From NCBI GenBank assembly GCA_964035545.1, contig OZ037765.1, positions 28,953,504 through 29,017,503 on the forward strand: a stretch of DNA of 64,000 bases, given 5' to 3'. The DNA is from Bugula neritina. Taxonomy: Eukaryota > Animalia > Bryozoa. The notes under the pieces were generated by a model. It saw only the letters and a program-made list of their open reading frames with translations. It was not told where the DNA came from and searched no databases. Below are positions 5,301-48,600 of this stretch, piece after piece (the stretch's first letter is position 1; every line of letters begins with the position of its first letter). The position numbers were made by a program, and so were the translations under genes.

Positions 5301-5916
5301 GTATTCTACTATAAACTAACACATTGCAGCAATAGATAATCTGTACAAGCTGACCAGGAAAATAATATAATATTGTTCCTTTGCTCACCAGGATGCTCGT
5401 TAACCATTTGAATAAGTTTTGTAACTGCATGGTCAGGTTGAAAGCTGTCGGGACATGGTTCAAAGTTGTGTGCAACACCCCCCAGTCCATCATTCGAATG
5501 TATACTAGCACGAAGTGAGCTTCCCACCGTCAGGGGCTTTGAGCATCCACGATAAACTGGAACCTACATACAGACTCTAGCTAAATATCTCTAAAATTCT
5601 ACAAAACATCAGGTGACCTCCTGTCTCATGCGCATAAAGCATCAAAAATAGTGTAAAGCAGAAAGCTACAATTCAAACTTTAACTTACACTTTGTTGAGA
5701 AACTTTGAGTGTGCGCAACACGTTTTGCACAGCAACATCAACTGGACAGTTACCACCAACACAGGTTATTGCAAGCAGGTCAATTTCTGAACAGATCTCC
5801 TTAGCATGCAACATCATGAGAATGGCCACAGCATCATCTACTCCACAGTCGCAATCAATTATAAACTTCTCCTTCTCGTTTGCAGAGTTATTCGCACTGT
5901 CACTACTGCTAGCCAT
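2359..5916 (-). CDS. Nucleoside hydrolase (IU-NH family, Cys-type 'xCDx' subgroup), complete copy B, 334 aa
   Basis: Six phase-compatible GT-AG exons: 5916-5689, 5563-5389, 4893-4777, 4097-3958, 3297-3078, 2483-2359 (1005 nt, ends TAA). Motifs DCDCGVDD (DxDxxxDD), HSNDGLG, LGPLTNLA, MGG, AEFNFHVDPESA, LCDP, TRGMLVIEW. Confidence 0.95.
3821..3900. repeat. Degenerate 11-bp tandem repeat (CTGGCAACTAA), about 7 copies, intronic
   Basis: gctggaaactaactgacaactaactggcaactgattggcaactaactagcaactagctggcaagtaact. Confidence 0.75.
4230..4746. mobile_element. MITE-like non-autonomous DNA transposon in hydrolase intron 3
   Basis: Inverted termini GTGTCATCGGAGTTAGACGCT (4231) / AGCGTCCATCTGGGATGAAAC (to 4745). 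Subterminal inverted repeat TTCCCAGTTAGACGCTATT (4290) / AATAGCGTCCAACTGGGAA (4692). AT-rich core. TSD only degenerate (TGCTATTA/TGCAACTA). Confidence 0.65.
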
Positions 5917-6401
5917 CTCAATAATGGTATATAACAGCTGATAATCCAATTATTAATCGTTCTGTGGTGTTAATGTTTGGTAATGCTAAGAATCACCATC
6001 TCAATCTGTATAAAATTAATATAGTGTAATTAGAGTCTATCAGTATCAGTAGAGTATAAATAGAATACCGCATACCGATACAAGACGGTAATAGTCACAG
6101 TGAGTACAAGACCAAGTTGAAGTTCAAGTTGAATTATCACTTTAACTATCAGGTTGAATATAATTATATCAATATAAAAACTAATTAATTTTAACTGTAA
6201 CTACTAGCAATGCCAAGCCTAAGGCCATTGGTTAATGGGTGTGTGAAAATAAAATTAAAAGCAAATAAAATTTACCAACAATCTGAACCAACAATGATAA
6301 TCACAATCACAATGTGAATGACAATAACAAAATAAAAATTAATAATTATTCAATGTAAATTAAAATTGATATCAAATTATTAAAAATTCAATAACCTTTA
6401 C

Positions 6402-18902: not shown

Positions 18903-21248
18903 TTAATCTTGTGCAGCATGAGCTCTGTTACTCTGAGGAGGGTGCACAAAGTGCTTGAGGGATCTGCCAGAACCTCCAGCTATATTATACGCCCATAAAG
19001 CCATTGCCACCAGGCTAATAAACAACAGAGTAATACTCCCTGCATAGTTGGGCTTTTTATCATCATAGCTGTAGTTTAGTATGGTCTACAATAAAATATT
19101 CCAAGATGAAAGGGTACTTTTATTATAATTCATAATTTAATTATTAATCAGTAGAAAATTGAAACATGAACACAACCAACAGTACAGCCAACTTTGATCA
19201 CTATATATTAAATTGCAAGCTTTTTCATTCAAATGCATTAATTTTTTAAAGTATAGCGATATTTACCAGCCCAGATACGAGCAGGTGGGATACGATAACT
19301 CCAATAACACCAGTGACATTTCGCCACAAAACATCAGAGTCCAAAGAGCCCATGAACACAATTCCCCAACACACGTGCAACAAGATGAAAGCTAGGGCCA
19401 TAAATGCTGCAATGAGAAAATATTGTTTGATAGACACAATTGAAAATATATTAATATTTGCAGATAAACCTATAGATGTTCAAAGTTTTGTATCCAACAT
19501 GTATACACTTGTGCCTAAATGTGTTTCAGATTGCCACACTTCCGTCATGTTTAATGCATGTAAAGGGTTACTCTGTGTAGTAACAATATTTACATGACTG
19601 TTACAACAACAAAACTGATAAAACAACTAAAATAATCCTATCTACAAAGTCACAGCCCATACTTGTAATGTTTAGACTTTAGAAGCTCATGAGTTCAACT
19701 AGAAAAATCTCAGAGTATCGTAATTTCACTACACATTGAAAATTTATAGGTATGAGCAGACAATTTCAAACAGATCAGTTGCTCTTGCCAACAACTTGAA
19801 TAATAACTACAATACGTATTCTAACAGGAGAGGGAAACAGGTATATTTGCTGACCTTGACACACAGGAGAGGCTGGTAAAACAGCGAGCAAAGGTAGTAC
19901 TGTGAAGTAGGACTGAGTAGTTGATAGCAATTGCTACTTACATGAAATAATAAAGAAATACTGTGACTGTCCAGCAATACCGACAGTACCAGGGCCACTG
20001 AGGTCTCTGAAGATGTTCACAGTGGCAAACGCTCCACTCACCAAACCATAGCCCAGTCCGGCAGCTGAAGACACAAATTAGCTGACTATTTGCAACATAA
20101 ATCAAGTTACTACCTTACAGAACTTCCACCATAACAACACAGATTTTAGAATTCTCAACACGTGTCTGTTAGAAGTATGTAAATTGATAGTTTTTATGTC
20201 TTTAGAATAGAACTTTTTATCAAGGACAAAAGAAAAATAACCAACAGTCCGCATGAAATACCATAGTTACTTTCAACATTTGACAAAACATGGAAACAAA
20301 TTAATGAAAAAATACAGCAGCTGAAGTTGTGATAATTCTTTATAAATTCTTTTTCAAATCAATACTGTAGCTACTTTCAACATTTAACTATGGAAACAAA
20401 TAAATGAAAAAATACAGCAGATGAAGTTTTGACATTTGTAAAATATCTTCCAGTGTCGAAATATCAAAAATATTAGATTGAAAGTAGTTTGTAACTTGCA
20501 GCAAAAAAGGTGTTTGAACATTCTATAACTATATTTTTAGAGACACTCTTCTACACAAACATGTTCAATAATTATTCCATATAATCGGATTTACTCACAA
20601 TAATATATTGCCAACATGTTTAATGGCTTCCTCTCTTGCTTTCCCTGATTGTGCACAGCTTCCAGACCAAGTCTTGCCTTGCTGTAGAATCAAAAGCCGA
20701 AATTCAAATAATAATCAATCTAAACTGTCCTCTAACAGAAATCTTACAGTAAGCCTTAACTTTGCTATAATACCAGTATTAACTGGGAGAAATGTACATA
20801 ATAGAAAATATAATAGATGTAATAGCAAAACCATAAAACAAAAACTGTAAATACCAGAGAACATAGTAGAATAGGAATCTGAACAGTTCTTGAAACAGGA
20901 CGGAGACAACAACTCCCATCACAAATTTACCAACACCCATCTGTACAGGTATGAGCCATATTAAAGAGCTGAACAAGAGGCTTAGCAGCCAAAAGAAGGC
21001 ACTACAAAGAAAAACCAAAAGTTTAAAACATCAAGTTGACTAATACACATAATCATACTGTTTGATTAGGTTATTGTTTAGTTGCTGTGATATCTTTCTG
21101 TTATGAAATATACCAAACAAGACAGATGCACATACCTTGCCATTAACATTATTACATGAAGAGGCTTTCGGGCAACAGTGACAACAAACATGGAAGCTGG
21201 GGCTCCAAATGTCACTAAGAGACATCCAAGCATTTCAACCACCGTCAT
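18903..21248 (-). CDS. APH1: Gamma-secretase subunit APH-1, 262 aa
   Basis: Six exons 21248-21136, 21001-20855, 20681-20599, 20064-19942, 19406-19267, 19085-18903 (789 nt). Motifs MTVVEMLGCLLVTFGAP, SAFFWLLSLL, SVLFQELFR, GLGYGLVSG (GxxxG), GPGTVG, LLHVCWG, SHLLVSGL. Confidence 0.96.
20268..20430. repeat. Tandem duplication (~104-bp spacing) in APH1 intron 3
   Basis: TACTTTCAACATTT...ATGGAAACAAAT.AATGAAAAAATACAGCAG.TGAAGTT at about 20268 and about 20372. Confidence 0.75.
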
Positions 21249-30600: not shown

Positions 30601-33600
30601 CTGAAATTTTGGTTTCATTGCAGGTCAATATAACCAACATTGGAAATTATTGCAGTTTAAAAATTTTGTTCTCACTTTTATTTAGTTGCAAGTCTGCTGT
30701 AGCCACAGTAGGTTCAGACGCCTTGTGTGGGTATAGTAGGTGGTGCTGTGTGTATAGAGCCAGTCAACCCATATAATGCATATGTATGAATACTTGAATT
30801 CATTGTCACTTTGGTTTGCAGCTGACTTTGGGTCGGCATCATTGTCGTGTCCCGCCAACTCCTTTGTCGGTACGCCATACTGGATGGCACCGGAGGTCAT
30901 CCTAGCTATGGATGACGGAGAATATTCTGGAAACTCTGATATCTGGTCTTTAGGTATTACCTGCATTGAGTTGGGTAAGTATTACAGTATACTATATTAT
31001 ATATACGTGTATTGTATTGTTTCAATAGTATGCAAGTATATATGTGTACATCAATCTGTGTACCACAGCTATTTCAGGGTTTGTCCCCTCATCATCACAG
31101 AACAGAGTTCCCTGTTCCACACCTACCTGTATACATGTACCTGTATATATATTGTTTCTATTTCATTGTTTAGCTTCTTGTATCTACTTGAGTTTTGCTA
31201 TATTTTAGCTGAAGGTAAGCCACCTCTATTCAACATGAATGCAATGGCGGCACTCTACCACATACCTCAGAATGAGGCTCCCACTCTCGCTGACCCCAAT
31301 TGGTCAGCTGAGTTCAACAGCTTTGTACAAACTTGTCTGACTAAGTCACCTGAAGACCGGCCTGGTGCTGCCGTCGCGATGACGGTGAGTCATTCAGCTC
31401 CTGCTCTACTTCTGTCAGCTATGTCAGCTCTCTGTGCGGTGTCTTGTGTTATAACTCTTCTTGATGTTTTGCAGCACACCTTCATCACGATGCACGCGGC
31501 GAGGTCGTACGATATTATAAGAGATTTGATTACTCGCACTAAAGCGGTTGTAAGGGAAATGGATAAAAGAAATGCCAGAAAAATAAAGAAGTTTTTAATG
31601 GAGGAGTACACGGAAGATAGCGTTAGTCTGACGGAGTCAAATGGAAGTCTGCCTCACACCGACAGCATATCTTTACCTGACGAGTCCTCCCAGGTATACC
31701 TGCTTGTCTTATACCCATAAATACCAGACTGTTGTCGCTTTACCTTCACCCCAATATTTTAATAGATAAGTTTCACCCTTTACTGTATAATACACTTAAT
31801 TGGTGCATTATACTCTAGCATACTACCAGTGCCAGCTGCTCGTGCTCAGTTTAATCTTGCTTCTGTTTAGATTCTACTTACCTGTCATATTTACACACTG
31901 GAGTTGTTTCCTCTCATACCTTAGAAGCGTTGCTGAATAGCTTTTCGTGCAGCTTCATGCATCAGTATAGCCACTTGCAATGTTAAACATAGCAGGCAGA
32001 AACTTCAGGCTGATGATTGCTGCACCATTTAGATTAAACCTACTAGTTGCTTGCTTGTAGTAGTTATTTGTTAACAAATTAATATACGGCTGTGACAGGA
32101 CGAGTACAGTAGTATGGGCGGTGGCAGCACTACTAACAGCGTGTGTAGCTCTGATATGAATCCCGACCCTACGTCAGATAACCTAGACAGTGATCATACA
32201 GAACGTCTTGACCTCACCCCTATGGCCACCCAACCTTTCTCTATTCACCGGGTAAGATACTCTGCTACTAACTACTCTATAAACAGTACTACTCTACATA
32301 CAGTACTATACTACATACAGTACTACTCTACACACAGTACTACTCTACATACAGTACTACTCTACATACAGTACTACTCTACATACAGTACTACTCTACC
32401 TACAGTACTACTCTACATACAGTACTACTCTACATACAGTACTACTCTACATACAGTACTACTCTACACACAGTACTACTCTACACACAGTACTACTCTA
32501 CACACAGTACTACTCTACACACAGTACTACTCTACATACAGTACTACTCTACATACAGTACTACTCTACATACAGTACTACTCTACACACAGTACTACTC
32601 TACCTACAGTACTACTCTACAAAAGATATCTTCTCTACAAACATGTATATTTCTTTTGCACATAGTTTGGTAGAAGTTTAACATCTATGGGTTTACTGGT
32701 CTCGTGCTTTTATGTAATTAAATTTAACTCCACAATATTAACAAATAATTGAAGTTTTCTTTAAAAATTTTGTCTGTAATACATCAACAGTTGTCCGTCT
32801 ACCCATCTATGATATCCAATATGTCAGAAGTATAGTACAACACATATTAGTATGTGTATAACAACACAGATTAGTATGTATATAACAACACAGATTAGTA
32901 TGGATGCCATCTAAAGATTAACTTATGATACTTCAGTCTGACTCTAATAGTCTCAGTTGTAAACACCTAAATCATTTATGTTATTGATAGATTAAACTTC
33001 ACCTTACTCTCATGTGTACAACCTTGTTGGTTTGATTAGCACATTATAGACAATTAACATTAGGTCCTGGACTACAACGCATAAGTGAAACCTCAATTTC
33101 ATCGCTCAGTTTTGCAGCAGAAAAGTTAAAGGCTGCCACATGTTCATCACCCTTGGTGTATTACAGCTAAACTTAGTAAATAAAACACACCTATAGATTT
33201 GTATTCAACCAATATTTGATGATATCCCGCTGGTATTTTTAATTATGTGTGTAATGATAACATTTCTATGCTTCTGTTAACATTGTGAATAGTTACAGTT
33301 TTTACTTGTGATGTGCTTTAGTAGAGTATCTTATACTCAGCCTTCATTCTTACAGCCGGCTTATAGTAACGGTGACGTGTTTATGTCTAATGGTAACACT
33401 CCTGTTATACACAACACCTTGCATGCCGACGCCTACATTCGGCAGCCAGGTCACGCTGCTGCCGGCCTACCCTACGCGCACGGGCGCAGTCGGAGATTTG
33501 TAAGTGTGGGTTGTTGTCGCATGCTCTCCCTTGTATACTGTTAACATTGTTTTGCGCTGCTAATGGTTCAACGACTCTTACTGCTTGCACCTCTTAATGC

Positions 33601-36600
33601 TGTGTTTTGGAGTGAAATACTCAACTTTATCTGGCTGTCTGTCGCCCTTTTGTGTTGTCGCTTTATTTTCTTCTGTTGAAGCTTGGTTTTGTGTCTGCTC
33701 GTCTCCAAGGGAGATAACTCCAATGTAATTTGCCCGGCTGACAACTCGAACTTAATTTAGAAGTTTGGGTTGCTTCAGTTATTGTGGGAAAGTTTTGTTT
33801 CCCCAAACATGTTAACTGACACAAGTTACATAAGTATGCTGTGTGCAACTCAGTACACAGCATACTTATGTGTTCACCTTTCAAAGTAAAGGAGTGTAGA
33901 GTCATTGTTTTATCGTGCATTGTATTGTATGTCGCATGATCTGGAGCAACTGGTTGGTTGTCTTTGCTACTTGGAGAAGTTTATTGTATGAATTTGTTGA
34001 TTCAGTGACTTCTGTTCAACACCAACTTTGTTTTATGCATTTGTCAGTATTAGGATTGGTGAGATAGTACATATAAATGTTGTTAGCTGTTATCTTTTGC
34101 CTACTGGCTGTTCATTTTCTATACATGCGCAAATTTCAAATTTATCATTTCGTATTAAACCACTCCTTGCCCACAAGTTGATTTGTTACTTGTGAATGTA
34201 ATATATGGTTGAATGAACCAGTGGCATGATAGTAAACAGTATGCATTTCTCACATTTCAGAACAATGTGGCCGGACAGGAAAGTAGTCCATATGGTAAGA
34301 ATGGTGATTTCTCAACCATCCGCACACCTTCTATTGTGAAGAAGCAGAAGGTGGAGCAGGCTCAAGATGATCACTTTAAGGAGCAAATGAATGGATACAA
34401 GAGGATGAGAAAGCAGCACCAGAAAGAGTTGCAGCAGGTTGCTATGTTCTTGTACATGTGTCACTACAGCTTCTATACATATGTCACTACAGGCTATATA
34501 CATGTGTCGCAACAGTTACACTGCGTACTCTGTAGTATGTATGTAAATATTTTATTTGGTTTTAATATATGTAGACTTTCTCTTTGTTAAACATATTAGT
34601 ATGGTTTCTGTGATATGCTTCTACAGCTGGAGGAAAAGCTGAAGAGCACTTTAGAAGCACACGAGTCCAAACTGTCCAGAGACTATGAGAATTGCATGAC
34701 TAACTGCTACAGAGAATTGGAGAAAGTTAAAAGGCAGCATCAGCAAAACAAAGACAAATCAGTAAGTGGCTGTTGTGTAGTATACTGTTGATACTACAGT
34801 ATGATATACTGTTGATACTACAGTATGATATACTGTTGATACTACAATATGATATACTGTTGATACTACAATATGATATACTGTTGATACTACAGTATGA
34901 TATGCTGTTGATATTACAATATGATATACTGTTGATACTACAATATGATATACTGTTGATACTACAATATGTTATACTGTTGATACTACAGTCTGTTATA
35001 ACACACCTCACGTGTCTGCGTTACAGTTGAGTGCGGCGCAAGCTGACGAGGATCATCTACATAAACATCTGCTGAAACAGCACAAGGTAGAGTTAGACAA
35101 ATTCAAGAAGGATCTGGCAAAGGAGAAGAAACAGAAGAATGAGTCTATGAAAAGAGTAGGTAGCTCTGCGTGTACTGGAGATGTCACCGTTACTTTGTGG
35201 TTATACTGTTGTATCTCTTACCATCACTTGTTGTAGTCGCTGAGTGCAACACCAAAAAGAGATAAAGAGGAACCGATAAAAAGCTTCAAGCAGACGCTGG
35301 ACCAGGAGCTCAACCAAGCCTTAACAGATAAGGTGAACAGTCAGGAGCGCATAACCAAATTGCAGATTAGAAAGTTCAAGCGTCAGAAAGTCATCGGGTT
35401 ACATCAGCTGGAGCAAAAGCAGCTTCGAGAGGTTTGCATCTCGTTTCATATGACTCGTTACAGCTAGTGTATGGTATTAATAGTTGTCTGCCCACCAGAG
35501 TCTTGTACTTGATACGTTATCAATTATTGCTGCAACCATCAGTATTCCATTGTAGATTCTGTTTTCAAAAGGAAATCTTATTTTATATGCTTTCTAATTT
35601 TTGCTTTAGAAATGCTTGATTTTTCACTTCCGGCATTAGGTTTTCTGATCTGAAAAAAAGTTTATTTAGTTGATTAGAAGTTGGTGAGTCATCATAAAGT
35701 GCTGACTAATCTGTACAATGTCTGACAGGAGTTGAACAAGAAAGAAGTGCATATGACGGCAGCACACAGCATGCTGGGTAGACACCACGATGAGATTCAG
35801 GACATGGAGTACAAGAACCTGGCAGCAATACACAAGCTGAGAGATGAGCAGCTGCGTAAGCAGCACAGCACCGAGATACAGAACCAGGAAGAGTACACAG
35901 ATCGGCAGCAGAAAGAGCTGCGCAAGAAACACGCCTTGCAGACAAAGCAATTACCTAAAAGTATTAATGTGAGTGTTGCGGGGTGGGATGTGATGTCTGA
36001 AATGTGTATGGCGTGAGCTGATTTAGTTGGAAATTGTGTGAATGTGATCTGTACTCGTCTTCTTTGCAGCTGACTTTATCCATGCTTAGCATCTTATCTT
36101 TTAGTTGAGTAGCAAAAGAAGTTATGTTCAAAATTTCAACCCTCGCCTCAAACCAAAATTTATAAAGAAATTTAAAGAATTTAGGCTATCTCAATTTCTC
36201 TACTACTACTCCTAAATGCTTACTTCTGAGCTGAGTTCCGTTTCATTGTAGGAAAGTCGAGCTCGAGTAAAGAAGCAGCTACGAGAAGCCTTGGACACTC
36301 AGAGCAGACAGTTTAAAGCTCGAAAAGAGGAGGAGTTGTCCCGGGCACCCCGTAACGAACACCAAAACGTGAAAAAGCGTCTAAAGGATGAACAAGACTT
36401 CAAGAGTGCCGAGTTATACGAGATGTACAGACAGATCCTGGACGACTTGGTCACTCAGCAAAATGTGAGTCTCAACTTGACGCAGTGTTCTGTGAGTGTT
36501 TATTGTGTGCAGTTCAGCAACGAAACTTAGTTCTTCATTGTATTCTATTTTGGGTTCTTAGCATATAAGTGCTCTACTTGAGTCATGTTTCATATTGGTC

Positions 36601-38550
36601 TCCCTCTTGCTTTCGTACTGCTCTCTGTACTTTCCTTAGTTGAAACTGTGATTTAGTTTTCTTCACTAAACTTTTTGGATATAATTGTGATTTATTAATT
36701 AAACTAGTTTTGAACTAAATGCTGAGACACACGATTATTTCATAAGCTGAAACAAGACAGCGGTAAAACTCATATTAAATGAGTAAACAATAACACTGCT
36801 GACGTAGAGGTTAAAGTCAAACTTAGTTCATTTTGAGATATTTTTAAGAAAATAGCCTATTGCCTAAGTTCTTGTACTTTTGTTTATTGGCTCCATATTG
36901 GTTGTTGAGGTGAAAAGAAGATAAAGTAACTAATGAATCTAATTCCTATGTTGTTATAACAAGTTCACTGAGCAACTTGCTTAACGTCTGCAGCTAGTCT
37001 AGAGTCGGTGTGTTAGTCATTATTCTAGTCAGCGTGTCATGTGGCAGTCAGTCAAGTGTTCCGCAGCTGCCGGCCACTTGGCTTGTCAAGGTTGATTGCA
37101 CTGCTCCTGCACTGAGCAGACATCCTAATCCAGTGCTGCCACTCGTGCTGCCTCTTACCTAGTATTGATCCCAGGAGCTGCTAGGGATGTGCTACACTTC
37201 TTGACCTAATGATGATCCTTACAGCAAACAAGGCGTGTCACCTCTTGCATAATTAATGTATTATACCACCCCTTGCTTCTTCTACTCTCACTAACAACTG
37301 TACAAACACTAGACTACACTTCAGTTGTATTTACATCTCCTTACAGCATCGAGTGTTGTAACTGTTTTGTATTACAGCATTAATCACACCTTCTCTATCT
37401 AGTCTTTGTGTTAACCACATGTAATACTACATTTATTAGCATACTAGCCATTAGCTCACAGATAATCCGATTTAGGTAGCAATATGTGCACCCCCTCCTA
37501 CCATTTGCACCTTCTCATCATCTAAGGAGTTTGTGGTTATGTCACCCTGACATCCTTGGGAACTAGTATAGCAGTTGCAGATAAATCCAGTGACTATACA
37601 GTCTGTCTGCTTACCTGTAACAGTACACTAGCCTACTACCTATTTAACACTGTTTGTTTGTCATAATGTCACAATAATTAAAGAGCTTAGGCTATCTCAA
37701 TTTCTCCATGACTGCTCCTATATGGTGTTACTCTGGTGTAGAGTGTCTGCTTAGTTGATATTTCATTGCAATAAAACTTATTAGCAGTGGTTTGACAAGG
37801 TGGACGGATATTTTTATGTTGCCCTTAACCTGTAAGTAGAGTCACAGTGTCTGCATGCTGTGCCACCAGGTGACGCTAGACGAGTCAAAGGAGGCGGAGA
37901 CCGTGGAACTGAAGAAGAAGCTGGTGCAGGAGACAGAGCTGCTCATGGCCTACCAGTCTAAGATCAGAATGCAGACAGACGGTCTGCACAGCAGAGAGAA
38001 GAAAGAGCTGCAAGACAGAGTCTCTCTTCGACGTGCTGAGCTCGAACAAAAGGTTGTCTTGCAGTGAAACGAAAAGTTTTAATTCAAACTAGGAATACTA
38101 TTTTAAATATGTGTTTATATTGTTATGTCAACTGAAAATTTAATTGTAACTGTAGTTAGTATATGTTAGTATATAAAAGTGTGATTGGGTGTTGGTAATT
38201 GAGTAGTAGCTCTGATTACAGGAATATTTAGAAGTTGCTTTAAGAGCATTTCATTGGAGCTGTTTGTCTCATGACTCTCTGATATTCTGTAGATTGAAGA
38301 CGAACTGCATAAGTTCAGTAATGAAAGGGCAACTTCTCAGCGTAAGTTGTATGAAGGACAAGCCAAAGAAATAGAACTGTTTGACAGTGAAACGAGATCT
38401 GCCGGTATAGATCCAGTAGACATTTACACAGCTGACGATGACTTTACTAGAATACTAGATGATGGTGATGGGTGCAGTGTTTCTAGTGCCACTCCATCCA
38501 ACGGTCTTAGCACCAGTAGCAGTATGACTTCATTTAACACCCAGCTTTAG
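27639..38550 (+). CDS. TAO: Ste20-family TAO kinase (TAOK1/2/3 orthologue), about 958 aa
   Basis: 17 exons, 2877 nt: 27639-27770, 28471-28542, 29686-29832, 30161-30311, 30822-30974, 31209-31384, 31475-31693, 32099-32251, 33356-33499, 34261-34437, 34627-34761, 35027-35155, 35237-35431, 35729-35968, 36252-36464, 37870-38052, 38293-38550. Motifs [66 protein letters not shown]...[16 protein letters not shown]-terminal coiled coil. Confidence 0.97.
32283..32621. repeat. 17-bp minisatellite, about 20 copies, TAO intron 8
   Basis: Unit ACAGTACTACTCTACAY. Explains the repetitive tail of ORF 32114-32665. Confidence 0.95.
32837..32902. repeat. 24-bp tandem repeat, about 2.7 copies
   Basis: Unit ACAACACAKATTAGTATGTRTATA. 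Confidence 0.75.
34781..34992. repeat. 24-bp minisatellite, about 9 copies, TAO intron 11
   Basis: Unit TATACTGTTGATACTACARTATGA with internal inverted repeat ATACTGT/ACAGTAT. Explains ORFs 34727-35011 and 34773-35030. Confidence 0.95.
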
Positions 38551-40879
38551 TCCTTGCCAGATACACTCTCCGCTGGCACCAGTCAGGCATAATACTATTG
38601 AAATTATTACATTGTATATCTTTTTAATAAAAATGAAAATTTTTTAGTGTACAAAATAATTGTTGTTGAACTGTTCAATTTTGATAACACTGCATGCTAA
38701 AGTAAAGTTGGTTCTATTATACATATATTTCGTTGATTGGTATTAATTAAATACCATACTGATGGTGCTTGTGATGGTGTAGTAGTTCTGTACTATTGGG
38801 AACTCTGCGTTCTACATAATGTGTATGATACTGCCCTCTGTATGTTGGAGTTATACTCTCATGTTCTGTCTAGCACACTTGTATTATATTAGATGTCACT
38901 GTATTGCATCTATTTAGTCACCTTGTATTTACTCGCCTTTCTTTCAATCACTCACTCAGGCGCAGTACCTTCTACTGTAGACAGTTGTACTCACACTGGA
39001 TATACGTTGCCCTGAACTATTTCACTATTAGTAAATTTTAATTCTATAATTATGGTAATAACTATATTATCTTAAATAAATTATTGACAACAAACAACAA
39101 AAATTGTTGAAAATTATTTAATGCTTACTAGACATTGTATTAGATTTTTTAGTGCACCTTCAAACATAACAAAAATGATTGTTAAGAAAAATTATCAATT
39201 TCAAAGACCTTGCAAGAACTGCCTTAGTATTGTATATTAAGTCAGAGCTGTAAACTAATGCTAGGATTAAAAAGATGGTCACATAAAGTGCATGAACTGG
39301 ATCTTTGGTTTTCTGCAATACTCACAACTGGTCCACTGCTACACAGCTTGTACATGGAAGAAATTATTAATGCAATAAAATTGTGGGTGGCGTGCAGCTA
39401 CATAAACTTGAGCTAAAGTTTCTGAAGAAATTGGCATAAAGTTTATCCGTCTCTGCATTCAATTATAGTTACACACAAATATTTATGTAATATGTTTTAC
39501 TGTTACAGATGCAGAGCAGCTTGTATATTATGTTCAATTATTGTGTAAAATATACACACTGCACACATATTTATGAGTATGTGCACTTTAATGGAGGCAT
39601 CTACCTATAGGTTATGTTAGTTTCTGCATCACTGGCCTCAGTCATTGCGATCTCCTGCAATACTGAAATATAGAAAACTATATCAACTGTTTACTCAGCT
39701 AGAATATGATCCTTTTACACCTTAGCTTTTTATTTCATATACCTGAAAAGTTATAGAACTGTCCTAGCAGTTGAATAACATTTTTTAAGTATACGGATGC
39801 TTTGAAATAAAAAATTAAGATGTAAAATAATCGTCTTATTCTAGCAGTTAAATGACTTTCTGTAACTCTGCTAGTGATAGCAACAAGAAATGTTTGTTAC
39901 CATTGAACTATAATATAGTTTCAGTTCAGTGTTTGTTACCTTTAGTTGACATCTCCTTTTAAACTTGCAACCTTCAAAGATGTCACAAGCTTTTGATTTG
40001 CTCTGATTTGCTACTGAAATGTAAATATATGTGAAACATAAATGCCACCAAAACCAGTTTTACATAAACAAGATTATTGTGTCAATGTGTTAAACTTACA
40101 TATGGGCAAATTTAACTTTGGTTAAGTGTTTAAATTGTATACACAATATATGAACTGTAGTGCATAAGTGCTCCCTTAGTCCTAAAAACGCTGGAGGTTA
40201 TTGGCAATATTATTGGCACTCTAGGTTACTGACATTGAACTGAGTGTTGTGTTACTTTCTATTGAGCAGTAAATATAGATGCTTTAATGTGAAACAAGTA
40301 AACCACCCATCTTTGTATGCTGTTAATGGGGTTGCTATAGGTTTGTTTACCTATTGAAGCAGGTGAACGTCTTTGGTTAGGTCATTGAATGAATAGCAGC
40401 TTTATAAATCTATTATTCAAATTGTATTATTCAATATTAAGTAAACTATGAAGTGAAGCTTTTTTTATTAGGAAACTTTGATTTTAATGACGTTTACACT
40501 TTCTAGCAGCATTCCATTGTATGAATCAGAATTATGAATAATAATGGTATGACTATTATGAACTTGTGTGTTCATACGTTTAGCGTATCACAAATACTAC
40601 AGAGCTGTTTAATTAGCCAATCCAGTTCCTTATAGTTACCCGACATCTTATACATATATAGTAAGCAGCGCTAATGTTGATAGTCAGTTTATAAATGCAC
40701 AAACTAAAGTGGAGCTGTGCGTTGCATTTATTAGAAAACTCAAATAGAGGGTTATGCACAGACTTGAAAAACTTCAACCTTGATTAATAACCCCTCTACA
40801 AAACAAGCTAGCTTTTAGTGGGACAAGAAAGCAACATACTGGACCCTGTTTTTTTATTACCAACAGGTAGATCTGTTAA

Positions 40880-43800
40880 ATGGGCTCAAATCTAGAACAA
40901 GGTAAGATTGAAGTAATGTTGTCGATGATTAGTGGCGTTGTGTATATAAACATTTTAAAACCTGTATACCTGTATCTATCCAGCTAACTGTCTGTCAGTA
41001 AAAAATCTTGGTCGACAAGCTATAAAACAGTTTATAGGCTATACAATTTAATAGTTGTTATTACAGTGTAGTCACAGCCTAAGATTGAGGGTTAGTTTAT
41101 CTTTAACTAATATATTTTCCCCTTAGTGTAGTACCACATGTTATGTGGTGTGCTTCATAAACTATTTTTCTTAATGTTCTACTTCTAAACTCATTCTAGT
41201 ATTTGGAGCTATTTATGTCAAAGGAATGAAATTTGTTTAAATCCAGGTTAAATACCATGCATGCAGTTTGAATCAATTTAAATAAAAAGTGAATAATTTT
41301 CATGAGCTATAAGTGAGTACTATTTTTTCAAAACCTCCAAGTTTAGAATTGTTTTTTATAATCTCCAATATATTTGGTATTTTTCTCATGTAAGAGTTTA
41401 CTATACACAGTGAAGTAAAATTATAGCTTATGCTTTCTTTAATTGCACTGCAGTGCTTACAGTAAACTATTGTTATGTATTGTGGTATTAAAATAGCAAA
41501 TATTACAGTAGCTTATTTAAACATAGCAAAACAAAATGACATGTCACAAGCAGTTTGTCCTAGAAAAGGCCTTCTACTACTTCGGTTGAACTAAAAAGTT
41601 TAAAACTTGTTGATTATGAATCCTTACTTCCATTATCATGATTCATAATATAAATTTGGAGCTGCTAATTGTAAAGAAAATTTTAATAAGGAGTAATGCA
41701 ATTAAACTGTTGCTAACAGGTATAGGTGTATTTACTTTAGCTATTAAAGTTTACTATTAACTTAGTTTCTTTTTTAACCATTTTTGTACAACTAAAATCA
41801 AATGATCCATCTTCAAATAATTTAGTATAGATATGTGCAACTTGTTTGCAAGACATGTAAATTGCAGTCAACTTAAATATTATTTATCCATTAAATAATA
41901 TGCAAAAAGAATGTTGTATATAGTTATATATATGTGCAGCTATTAAAGATGTTTTGTGAATAAAAAATTAATCTTAAATGTGACTAAGTTAATAATGACA
42001 CCCACACACATGCTCATGCATCTTTGGTGCAAACTGTTTTAACAAATCAATAAATCAATCTTTAAAAAATGATATCATTGTCGCTTTTAAGTTAGTTGCC
42101 ATTGCAGCTGATAAACTATATTATATCCGTGCATAGTATTTGCTTATTACTATTTCAAACCTATCAAAAGTATTTGAAACATTTGATTTTATGCATTATT
42201 GGGCTTTAAAAAAGAGCAGGCATTTAACACGTCTGCGCCTAGTTAAATCTAAGATATTTAAAGCTAGAACAGCTGCATATGCTTTATAGCAGCAAGTCTT
42301 TATTTCTACAATCTATGTAATTGAATTGTTATAGTATTTTAGCTATAAAATACTGACAGAGGGGAAACTAGACATTTATATACAAGATAAAATGGCACAC
42401 AACAGATTGTGGATGCCACCAACTTGGCTAATGTGCATTTTCTTTTGGTCTGGAACTGTTCTTGTATCCACTGGGGCAATTCTCTTTATTAGAGAGCATC
42501 ATGAAGGAGAAGCAACTAAGCAGTAAGTAGAAATGTTCACATTGTTCTACACACAAACACATATACAAATATTTATAAATGCTATATATAATATAATGTT
42601 ATTATTTAACTAAAGTGTTCAGCAACAATTTTTTTTAAGATCTTATATGTTAATCCAGCACTACTTTGTTGAATTGTCAACTAGATGTCTTGCCATGTTG
42701 TAATGATATGTATACGCTAAAACAATATTACACTCAAAAACTTTGAATTTACATTATTTAGTACTCAGAAAGTTTAACTTTAGTTTGGCTGTACAGCGAG
42801 ATAAAAATTAACTTTCTTTCTGGATTTTTATTTAGAAATTCACATGAACTTAAACTATTATGTGATATTTTGAAACATTATAAGAGTATCAAGCATTAAT
42901 ATGATTTTGTTTTATATTATTTTCTAATTTGTAAATATAACTAGTGAATGACTATGAGCAATAGTCAATACTTTGCAAATAGCTAAAGATTCAATGATAG
43001 CAATTATTTCCTATATTATGTTGTTGAAGGTTATATATGTAGCAAAGTACATAATGCAAGGTATGGCAACTAATTACGCATAGCTACATAGTTGCCAAGT
43101 TTATGCTACGCTGTTATAAGCTAGATGAAGTGCTGCCTTTCATACAGCATGTAGATGTAAACAGAGCAAAGTTTAATAACTGCCATTAGCATAATTGTTA
43201 TGGCACTAATGAGCAGAAGAAAGCATTTGTATGCATAAAGAAGGAATTATTTGTATGCATACATGCCATTCCATGTATACAATGTGTAGCACATACTGTG
43301 TACCATTTTTATAGCACAATAAAGATTCAAGTTGCTATCAACTTACAGCTAAACCATCTATGAACTTGTAATCAAAGATTTATATTTATAAATTAGAATC
43401 TTTATAACCTAAAAAAGCAAAATGGTATATTATACAGTAGTAGTCAACAACAACTAAAGTGTACAATTTCTAGCCTAGAAAACTTCTATAGTATATTCTA
43501 CATTTCTTTATGATTATTGACAACAGCTAAAATTGAGTTGATCATTTCAAAAACTGGGGCCCTTCTGTAACAAAATGGTCTTGTTAGCTGGTTTTATTTG
43601 TTATAGAGTTGTATGTGCAACTATTCAATATAATTATATGTATTGCCTATTTGATTTCCTTGCAAGGTGGGTTTAAATTAGTTCAGTACTGCTGTTGGAT
43701 TTATCTAATTTTCTATAATGAGTAGAATTTAAGCAAAACTGTATTTATTTTGTAGAGCTTTTTTCATATGTGCAGTGGTATCAACAATTATTGGAGTTAT

Positions 43801-43903
43801 ACTCCTCATGGTATACTTCATTTTCTGTACCATTTCCTTTGTCTGCTACTGTGGCTATGAGGTTCAGCAAGATACAAGACTAAAGAATTCTTTTGATGCC
43901 TAG
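40880..43903 (+). CDS. Unrecognised small two-pass membrane protein, 110 aa (92 aa if started at ATG 42392)
   Basis: Three phase-compatible exons: 40880-40901 (donor GTAAGA), 42360-42522 (acceptor GACAG, donor GTAAGT), 43756-43903 (acceptor TTTTGTAG, TAG); 333 nt. Translation MGSNLEQEGKLDIYIQDKMAHNRLWMPPTWLMCIFFWSGTVLVSTGAILFIREHHEGEATKQAFFICAVVSTIIGVILLMVYFIFCTISFVCYCGYEVQQDTRLKNSFDA. In-frame TAA immediately precedes the first ATG. AATAAA at 44365. Confidence 0.75.
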
Positions 43904-45667
43904 AGAAGTATTTGTGTAATTTGTAAAAATGATATGTATGAACATTAATCTGCCTAGCAGCAGTTGCCATGTAATGTATTATAATATTTTTGCAACTCAA
44001 GTTGTATAGTCAGTTTTTCAATAATTTGGGTGAAGTTGTTAATTTAAGGAAAACCATGTGTAACATGCAAAAACTGTTCTTAGATAAGTGTGTAACATAT
44101 TCAGCATATTGTACAAAGCAGTGGAGGAATTCTACTAATTATGCTATACATACTTAGATGATTGTGTTATATTATGACTATCTTGTTACATTGCATTTAT
44201 CGGCTTTTACATTCAGTTTTATTCTTATACCATACATTAATTATTAAGTCATGATTGAGGTTACAACACTTGACTTAAATACATACTCTATGAACCTATA
44301 ATCTTTTTATTCATATGTATTATATTAACACAATGCATTGAGATATTTCCTATTTTACTTGGTCAATAAATAGCTGTTAATCAATTGAGAGGTTTAAAGC
44401 AAGAAAAAGTATAGCAGTGACTGTTAACAAAAGAATGATCGGAAACAACCATTATTTTTAGCTTTCAAGGTTTAAAAAACTGTCTATGTCATCTACACTC
44501 AACTTAGTTTCTGGAAGTTCAATTATTTCACACTAGCTTGGATCAAGTACAATTTAATGGATGAATTATCCCCTTTCCTTATATAATCTATTGAGCCTAA
44601 TAAAACTCTACCAATGAAGACTTACACTCAGTTAACCAAACTACACATTTCAAAAACCTTGAGTTATCACGACAGTCAAGTGCTTTCATTAGTAAATTTG
44701 CATTTAAGTGTACAGCTCTATTTACAACAATCCCAGCTGCAAAAATGACATATTCATACCACTTCAAGTAAAGTAAACGACTATTGCTTGGTTACTTCTG
44801 TATTTTTGATAATAATTTGTATTTTGAAAATGACCATCTCACTAAAGGCCATAATTGCTGATAAATTATCAAAGTACTACTCAATGCACGAGTATAGAGT
44901 TGTCTACACATTGTTGGAGTTGCCATATTTATTTTCACCCTAGATATCCTTTCTATTATTTTATTTCTGAAAGTTATTTATAAGTAATGGTTCCATCACA
45001 CTAGTAATTAATTTAGTTCCTCATACCGACAAAGATGTCTACAAGTACATCTACCAACTTATTAAATTTGCTATAAGAATATTGATGAAGTGCAGAGATG
45101 CAAGTTTTCAATTAAGGCTCACCTATTTGATAGAAGTAAATACTGTGAAGATATTGAATGCTAAACATATAAAAAGCCAACATATGAATCCTGATTCTAA
45201 ATATCAATATATTTATATGAACAAACAGTAGGAATAAGTGAGCACTTTTATTACGTTATTAAAAAATAGTACAAATGCATGCATCTGGCCATAATAATCT
45301 GTACCTAGTTGGTGATAACCAACCAGCGAGAAGAAAAGCTGTTCTACCATCACCACAATGGCCAATAATCATTATACTTTCATGATAGTGTAAACAGAGG
45401 AGTATTATGGAACAGGGTCACACAAATCCTAAAGATTATATAATAATAACCTTACATTGTAAGTAAACAAATTGTGTAAAAGTGATAGTGCACTAGCAAA
45501 CACTATTCAATACTATATCCTAGAAAATCCGATGGAGCTATGAGCTGCACAAAATGACCTTACAGTCTTCAATGTCGCCTTCTAACCATCTCTCAGCCAA
45601 ACCATTGCTCACAAGTAGTTATAAATACAAGCTCAAAAATACAATAACTAGTGTGAAAAGCTAAGCA

Positions 45668-48600
45668 TCAAGGTTGGGGGTGTGGAGGGGCTCCCCCAAA
45701 GTTAAAAGAATTTGGTACACTAACATTCTGAAACTGGTAACCTCCCAGCATCTCAATCTTCTTTGACTCTAAAAGTAAAAAGACTGGCATATAAAAAGGC
45801 CAAATAGCACTTCTCTCAAGAACAAATTGATTACGGAACATGGTTATGTAAAACATTTCAAACTCGTATATGCATTTGTCAATCAGAAAATCTCAACACC
45901 ATTATTCAGTGGAGTAGCCAAGGTGCAAGAGAAACTGCTACATGACGCCTGCACTTTCTCACACTGATAGACCAGATACCGTAAGGGGATACGGCACAAA
46001 GGGAGGGAGGGAGGGAGGGGAGCTCACCTTCTACTGCCCTGCGCTGATCAGCCATTGTAATTATCTCCTGCACTTCTTTTTGCTGGTCTTTGTCCAAATG
46101 ACCAGTTAAGGAGGAATACCATCCAGGGTCTTCTGTGTGCAGACCTGCAGAATTACAGAGTCTATCTATGGGAACACAAGTTATAATGAAGGAAGGTGAA
46201 ACAAAGTGCTAGCAAGTATCCTGTAGGAGTCCATTCACGGGTGACACTGGCAAAGTGTCACCCCGGACAAGTTCTCCAAGTTAATATAGCCCAAAGGCAG
46301 ACCACAATGACAGCTAGAAAGTCTGTCGTGTGACATGAATACACCCGGGCACATACTCTACACATAGCAGATCCTACACGCAGTAGACACAAAGAGAGAT
46401 ACATGTAGAGATACCTACTCGACAAGACCTCTTTGAATATTACATATTCATCAACATCACAGGACGCTGACTCCAGAACAGACTCGTACATCTCCAACGC
46501 TGTCTCGTATTCATCCTCGTCACCTTCACTGTCCTCGTCACTGTCATCATCATCCTAGAATAAGGTGTATAGTCAGCTGCTAAGAGAACTGTACACAGCG
46601 TGCTACATAAGCCTGCATGCATTTGTTTAGTGGTAAGACAATAACTACTATATACAACAAATCTATATAAATTCACACAACTTCCAGCTGGCAGTTATTG
46701 TACAAATATTGCCTTGTCGAAAGTCTTCCAGTGGATAAAGGCATTTGTCCCACCAGCAGATGGTCAACACATGGGACACTCTCCATACCTGGAAGAACTT
46801 CTTACAAAAAGTTTTTTTTATAAGGCAGCTAATGACTGTGTATCTGAAGCATAGGAACAATTATGACAGGTTGCTCTTGCTGACAACACCAATAGCCCTG
46901 GCTGGGACTAGGACTGCTGCCGCAGACCAACACGAGCAACCTACCCCGTTATTCAGGCCGTCAACGTAATCGGCATCCTCGTTGACATCATCTTCGTCAT
47001 CCTCCAGCTCGTCGGGCACAAAGTCGTCTCCACCTTCGTCCTCGTCGTCGTCCTCATTGTCTAGCGTCTTGTTCACGTCAGCCCGGCCTATTACAAACAA
47101 CCAAACAGAAAATAGAGCACGAAACTCTAGAGCCGCAAGTCTTCAATTACGCGGTGGATATCAAGAAACAACTTTACAATATCCAGCACACCCTACAGTC
47201 TACACGGACAACATTCAAACAGGAGGAACCAAAGTAAATCACACAAATGAGAAACAATCACTTTACTTACAGGAAGTGTTTGAATTGATATCTGCGTGAA
47301 GTAAAGAGTAAGACAAGGTGAAATGAGACGATACGTGATAAAGACACCTGCAATTTACAGATGAGTGGCTGATGCACAGAATATATAAATGAAGACATCT
47401 TACTTTGATAAGCTTTCTTCAGGCCCCTGAATATGAGGAGAGCGGCAGGCAGTATCTGACTGGCCACCTGTGTGACAATCTCTGGCCGGTTGTGAGGAGT
47501 ATTCATGAGACAGCACAGCCCCAGCACACACATCTTCCTGTCGTGCAACCTGTGACAGACAAGGTAAGGTGCTTGTGACAGGTGCTTACCAACTGTCAAC
47601 ACATTCAAACATGGCAGAGGCAGGTATCGTGTAGCAGACTATTCACGGGTGAAACTGACAAGAGTGCCACCTCGGACAATTCATCTTCCGTTAGTATAGC
47701 CCAGAGTACTGAGTGAGACAACTAAAGTTACCTCACAGAACAGAGATTCGGGCTGATTGTGTATGGCTGAATTGATGGTAAAGTAATGTCGCACATACCC
47801 CAGGAAGACGTCGCAGTCGTGTAGCCACTGCTTAATAAACTGTTCAGTCACAGACTGCTCTGATATCTGCAGACTATTGAGCATTTCAAAGAGCATTGGA
47901 GGGTTATAGTAGAGGGCAGCAATCACCACCTGCAGGCACATAGCCCGCAGTTCTGCAGTCTTTACTTCTCTCGTGAGACGCTCTAAGGCTAAGCTGATGA
48001 ACAGAGATACCGCCTACAACACGCACAGAGTGGAACCCATCATTTGCTACATACATCAGCTAACGCCAGACAAGTCACATCAGTTACATGAGAGAGGGAG
48101 GGAGGGAGAGAGGAAAACTCACGCTGTCTATCTGGCCTTTATACTGCAGCAAGAGTATTTCTATTAGCTTGGCAGCATGACATTCTGCATCTTCACCGCT
48201 GTCGGTGGTGAGAATTGTCTTACACATGTTGTAGATGATTTCCAGGTGCTTGGGATCCGAGGAGAACTTCTCCGGATCCACTGTGACATAGTTGTGAAGG
48301 CAGGGCATCATTTCTACAATCATATACAGTAGTATATACATACTGCACACATATACAGTAGTATACACATACTATACACATATACAGTAGTATATACATA
48401 CTATACACATATACAGTAGTATACACATATTATACACATATACAGTAGTATACACATACTATACATATATACAGTAGTATATACATACTATACACATATA
48501 CAGTAGTATACACATACTATACACATATACAGTAGTATACACATACTATACATATATACAGTAGTATACACATACTATACACTGTATACAACACGAATAT

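Follow-up and report, generated by a model that had tools for sequence, protein, structure and literature searches.

A spliced, single-copy gene for a constrained 92-residue protein with two predicted membrane helices, lying between TAO kinase and importin-7 in Bugula neritina

Small proteins that cross the membrane as two helices are known from several unrelated settings. TMEM100, PIRT and barttin belong to vertebrate families with longer cytoplasmic tails. The dispanins (CD225, IFITM-like proteins) are small, combine two hydrophobic segments with conserved palmitoylatable cysteines, and have gone through many lineage-specific expansions. Subunit c of the ATP synthase and the proteolipids of the V-ATPase are helical hairpins with an essential carboxylate in the second transmembrane helix (TM2). 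Finally, in under-sampled phyla it is common to find small membrane proteins that are orphans.

The gene described here, from the bryozoan Bugula neritina, encodes a 92-amino-acid protein that resembles each of these in part. With TMEM100, PIRT and barttin it has in common its small size, two membrane helices, a short loop and membrane-adjacent cysteines that are possibly acylated. The original prediction had drawn this comparison; read as family membership it fails, since none of the three appears among the Pfam matches of the exon peptides or of a full-length orthologue, even at E values up to 10. The dispanins are likewise small and have two hydrophobic segments and conserved cysteines, but the protein has no CD225 match in Pfam, its gene is single-copy, and its WMPPTW and CYCG motifs are its own. 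The ATP synthase c subunits and V-ATPase proteolipids form hairpins of similar length and are the nearest structural neighbours, although at insignificant scores (Foldseek E > 1). In place of their TM2 carboxylate, all five available sequences lack any D or E within TM2, and Pfam returned no ATP-synt_C row for the 92-aa protein. The closest likeness in kind is to orphan microprotein genes, which also have exons below the usual length cut-off, no homologues beyond their clade, transcription and purifying selection. By contrast, young de novo genes differ from this one, which is old within its clade, as its saturated synonymous sites indicate, and strongly constrained.

The window, that is the whole stretch of 64,000 nucleotides that we analyzed, has the composition of AT-rich animal DNA. 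TAO kinase exons run along its plus strand and end at 38550, and exons of importin-7 (IPO7) occupy the minus strand from about 45906. Long tandem repeats at 32114-32665 and 34727-35030, in introns of the TAO kinase gene, give rise to spurious long ORFs on both strands. Near the start of the window, an inosine-uridine nucleoside hydrolase-like gene has two first exons that are almost identical (235-471 and 5680-5949, both on the minus strand); they lie ~5.4 kb apart and look like a recent tandem duplication. ORFs at 20779-21248 on the minus strand are presumably exons of the gamma-secretase subunit APH-1, which they resemble by eye.

It was in the gap between TAO and IPO7 that a hidden gene, spliced and encoding a small two-TM protein, had been proposed, and contig joints, orthologues and constraint now bear this proposal out. 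We are confident that positions 40723-44370 on the plus strand hold a single-copy, transcribed and spliced protein-coding gene with a 92-aa product (Table 1).

Table 1. Features of the gene and of its predicted protein, in window coordinates (gene) or residue numbers (protein).
Feature	Position	Strand	Remarks
Exon 1, non-coding 5' UTR	40723-40901	+	contig cover (run X1 record 1); 40723 is the leftmost contig-covered base of the exon, not a mapped transcription start
uORF start	40880-40901	+	ends in exon 2, at TAG 42338-42340 (9 codons) or TGA 42354-42356 (11 codons)
Intron 1, GT..AG	40902-42342	+	two alternative acceptors 8 bases apart; last base 42334 or 42342
Exon 2	42343-42522	+	other isoform begins at 42335; 5' UTR through 42391; run X2 record 20 covers 42341-42522
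CDS part 1	42392-42522	+	residues 1-43 and two bases of codon 44; WMPPTW motif, TM1, RE-x-HE loop
Intron 2, GT..AG, phase 2	42523-43755	+	joint 42522 to 43756 in RNA-like contigs
CDS part 2	43756-43903	+	third base of codon 44, residues 45-92, stop; TM2, CYCG motif, acidic/basic tail
3' UTR	43904-44370	+	X3 and X10 contigs cover 43904-44332; AATAAA at 44365-44370
N-terminus	residues 1-12		net positive; invariant W7, P9-P10-T11-W12
TM1	residues 13-33		near-invariant in four species; rich in small/polar residues (G21, T22, S26, T27, G28, A29)
Loop	residues 34-44		11 residues, net negative; R34, E35, H37, E38 invariant
TM2	residues 45 to ~76		invariant C49, A50, T54, G57, C68, C74, Y75, C76
Tail	residues 77-92		G77, then mixed charge

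In an index search of sequencing data, 12 runs belonging to four studies contained 5-13% of the words of 40300-44700, the amount expected from the exons alone. A thirteenth run, from a fifth study, contained 97% of them and probably stems from the genome sample itself. When contigs from four of the runs (X1, X2, X3 and X10, one per study) were aligned to these 4401 bases, their cover was confined to three islands: 40723-40901, ~42335-42522, and 43756 to ~44332. The polyadenylation-type signal AATAAA at 44365 is consistent with where this cover ends. The contigs skip the introns between the islands at joints with GT..AG ends. Position 42522 is joined to 43756 in X1, X2 and X3, and in X10 a loose end reads the end of exon 2 before 43756. 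Exon 1 is joined from 40901 to 42335 in X1, X2 and X3, and from 40901 to 42343 in X2, X3 and X10, the latter joint backed by loose ends that read CTATAAAA after 40901. Both acceptors are thus in use in several studies. That the runs are RNA is a guess from the search tool, for which the splice joints argue. Each coding exon has exactly one match in the species' own 216-Mb assembly, at this locus, so the genome holds no intron-less DNA copy that could mimic splicing, and the joints therefore favour RNA. Searches with both coding exons likewise found no paralogues in the own genome.

A search with the exon-2 peptide returned two database proteins. One (P0001) is the exon-2 ORF on a 14-kb metagenome contig; the other (P0002), 79 aa long, crosses the join of exons 2 and 3 exactly as expected from the gene model. 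P0002 is encoded by cDNA-like contigs (L003 and L004, also L008 and L011). L003, from a second species (species B), reads straight across the position of intron 2 and contains an ORF of 92 aa (291-569) that begins Met-Ala; L008 has the same ORF. In L011, from a metatranscriptome of species B, the corresponding frame (219-521) changes near the C-terminus relative to L003 and L008 and ends in EDKK followed by 15 other residues, which may reflect a variant allele or a mistake in assembly. Genomic contigs add the surroundings of the gene. L005 (species C) contains both coding exons with the position and phase of intron 2 identical. They are preceded by TAO exons on their own strand and followed by IPO7 exons on the other one, and L009 and L010 (species D) agree with L005 in intron position and phase and in the order of TAO, gene and IPO7. 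L006 and L007 contribute exon 3 from a close relative of species B. In the adjacent TAO and IPO7 exons, identity to the other species is 55-87%, which, together with the saturation of silent sites described below, indicates that the other three species are not close relatives. The gene thus has orthologues in no fewer than three further species, all deeply diverged, with its intron position and its TAO and IPO7 neighbours kept. It had been called an orphan, a term that fits in the lineage-restricted sense only, given these clear orthologues with the same neighbours.

The start of the protein differs from the one first put forward. The original prediction read a protein of 110 aa from the ATG at 40880, with a Met-Gly start and three coding exons, the second entered through an acceptor at 42360. 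All the sequence signals cited for this model are present: ATG 40880, the donor AAG/GTAAGA at 40901, an AG directly before 42360, the donor GCA/GTAAGT at 42522, an AG directly before 43756 and the stop codon at 43901-43903. Joined on paper, the three pieces do give a frame of 333 nt free of stops, and the context of ATG 40880 is strong, with A at -3 and G at +4. The contigs confirm both donors and the acceptor 43756. The acceptor 42360, in contrast, is used by no contig of the four runs and four studies, and the frame of ATG 40880 stays open only through it. The acceptors that are in use, 42335 and 42343, lengthen exon 2 by 17 or 25 bases, and the added bases stop that frame after 9 or 11 codons. 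Moreover, run X2 has a 1-base deletion at 42365, within the stretch taken as coding; the orthologous cDNA L003 has an in-frame stop four codons before its ATG; the four variants in exon 1 fall at no regular codon position; and the exon 2 DNA alignment shows no cross-species conservation upstream of 42392. We therefore regard the 110-aa protein as very improbable.

Rather, ATG 40880 is the start of a short uORF and not the protein start. In both isoforms, the ATG at 42392 is the first that follows the last upstream stop in the main reading frame. The 5' UTR therefore comprises exon 1 and the initial 49-57 bases of exon 2. The two parts in exons 2 and 3 make up the coding sequence, whose start methionine is aligned in four species. 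The 18 N-terminal residues that bring the predicted 110 aa above the actual 92 are consequently false, exon 1 is non-coding apart from its uORF, and the Met-Gly start with its suggested myristoylation lies outside the real protein. Because 42335 and 42343 both fall within the 5' UTR, the choice between them alters the end of the uORF only. The context of the uORF ATG, with its A at -3 and G at +4, is as strong as that of the main ATG at 42392. The L003 cDNA has short uORFs too (ATGs at 48 and 147), whose peptides are unrelated to that of the window's uORF. This suggests translational control through the presence of a uORF rather than through its sequence, and a uORF in so strong a context could limit translation of the main ORF.

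The pattern of substitution bears directly on whether the reading frame is used. Between species and summed over the two coding exons (Nei-Gojobori), pS is ~0.83, which is saturated, against a pN of 0.14-0.18 (about 0.15). Differences at codon positions 1/2/3 number 17/11/53, 22/11/48 and 23/15/50 in the between-species comparisons, and protein identity within the clade is 66-84% despite the saturated synonymous sites. In the exon 2 DNA alignment, conservation begins exactly at ATG 42392 and stops at the donor. The same holds on a shorter time scale: among contigs of the window's own species or species complex, seven of seven CDS variants are synonymous changes at third positions, and indels and the remaining variants are confined to the UTRs. 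The gene is under strong purifying selection on its reading frame. A spliced non-coding RNA or a 3' extension of TAO with a fortuitous ORF could accommodate the uORF upstream of the main ORF, as well as the fact that the product is known here from sequence and RNA-like contigs alone. It would leave unexplained the three-periodic substitutions and the pN far below pS in four species, as well as the purely synonymous variation within the species. In addition, no contig joins the gene to TAO, 40300-40593 is empty of contig cover except for one spurious 22-base match, and Rfam has no family in 38500-46200. A non-coding origin of the transcript is in our view barely credible.

To place the protein, we searched with the exon peptides singly and with the orthologous cDNA ORF (L003:291-566) as a full-length proxy. 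In Pfam, both exon peptides and the full-length orthologue, at E values up to 10, matched only generic transmembrane families below threshold. The best of these weak rows were CD20/MS4A (16.4 bits, cut-off 27.9) and tetraspanin (14.4 bits, cut-off 32.1); we rejected membership in either, since the scores lie below the curated cut-offs and the protein has two helices rather than four. Sequence searches of NCBIfam and PDB gave no match, and searches of the ESM Atlas by features, over all clusters or named ones only, gave no usable match. Foldseek against PDB returned generic hairpins with E above 1 throughout, and the ESM Atlas shape search again generic hairpins. Word-index protein searches found no relatives outside the gene's own orthologues. 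An exhaustive phmmer (HMMER) search of 1.84 billion cluster representatives, a single-sequence search with low reach for a short TM protein, retrieved only P0001-P0003, which are own orthologues. The earlier statement that no family could be recognized agrees with these results across Pfam, NCBIfam, PDB, ESM Atlas and Foldseek.

One reading of these results is that the protein is a highly diverged orthologue of a widespread small hairpin subunit, such as those of ER, Golgi, V-ATPase or mitochondrial complexes. Short TM proteins quickly lose detectable similarity, and the transcript is readily assembled from many small runs, as expected of a housekeeping subunit, although read depth cannot be ranked. 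Against this stand the slow evolution within the clade (66-84% identity at saturated synonymous sites), the failure of the Pfam models of known small subunits to match, and the yield of the exhaustive phmmer search, which was orthologues only. We consider such an origin improbable. Rather, this seems to be a lineage-restricted orphan microprotein gene, apparently confined to bryozoans as far as the protein, family and structure databases searched here can tell.

The two hydrophobic helices, the loop and the cysteines of the original prediction all lie within the real exons 2 and 3 and so carry over to the 92-aa protein. The juxtamembrane cysteines are conserved: C68, C74 and C76 are invariant in five of five exon-3 sequences (those of four species and of species B's close relative), and C15 is so in each of the four species for which exon 2 is available. 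Of the His-His-Glu cluster noted in the loop, H37 and E38 are invariant, as are R34 and E35, whereas position 36 varies (H, E, F or H across the four species). An AlphaFold2 model, computed from the single orthologue sequence that served as full-length proxy, is a helical hairpin with helices at 10-39 and 43-91 and a mean pLDDT of 75.7. A misaligned MAFFT alignment had hinted at an internal duplication relating TM1 to TM2; we discarded this idea, as BLASTP found no alignment between them at E values up to 100.

How might such a protein act? The predicted product is a two-helix membrane hairpin. The N-terminus carries a net positive charge and the 11-residue loop a net negative one in four of four species, so that both ends would be cytoplasmic and the acidic, His-containing loop outside or luminal; this charge bias is weak, since the C-terminal tail is about neutral. 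In that orientation C15, C68, C74 and C76 would sit at the cytoplasmic membrane edge, which is the usual setting for S-acylation of cysteines, and they are putative S-acylation sites. The extreme conservation of the helices and the spacing of their small residues lead us to propose specific helix packing: the near-invariant helices, rich in small residues, may pack against copies of the same protein or against a partner membrane protein, and the protein would then serve as an accessory or scaffolding subunit rather than as an enzyme or receptor. We offer this mode of action, a palmitoylated hairpin working by helix packing, tentatively and at somewhat less than even odds, judging from sequence features.

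The same residues could be read as the lining of a homo-oligomeric pore or ion-conducting ring, after the manner of viroporins or proteolipid rings. The small and polar residues of the near-invariant TM1 (Table 1), together with A50, T54 and G57 in TM2, would suit such an assembly, and most of the weak structural neighbours are hairpins from c-rings and V-ATPases. Those structural matches are to generic hairpins, all at E above 1. Acidic or other ion-binding residues are absent from the membrane-embedded parts of both helices, and a pore helix would not fit in so short a loop. These points make a pore as improbable as the diverged subunit considered above. The wider proposal that a bryozoan-specific, ancient and constrained hairpin has become part of a membrane complex, as its obligatory subunit or as a pore-forming oligomer, we consider unlikely, if less so than either of these. 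Taken as a whole, the gene model combined with a constrained hairpin that may act by packing is the explanation that probably accounts best for the observations.

The locus is a clean case of a real gene overlooked by ORF-length filters. It also holds a lesson for annotation, in that a plausible splice model drawn from sequence alone, off by a single acceptor, produced 18 false residues. The gene shows no sign of an unusual mechanism, and its interest is therefore modest. If the protein were indeed an obligatory subunit or a pore, it would represent a phylum-restricted microprotein recruited into otherwise conserved membrane machinery. That TM1 stays nearly invariant over a divergence great enough to saturate silent sites suggests an interaction in the membrane that is specific and probably important. 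With this gene, a poorly studied phylum gains a strongly conserved family without detectable relatives.
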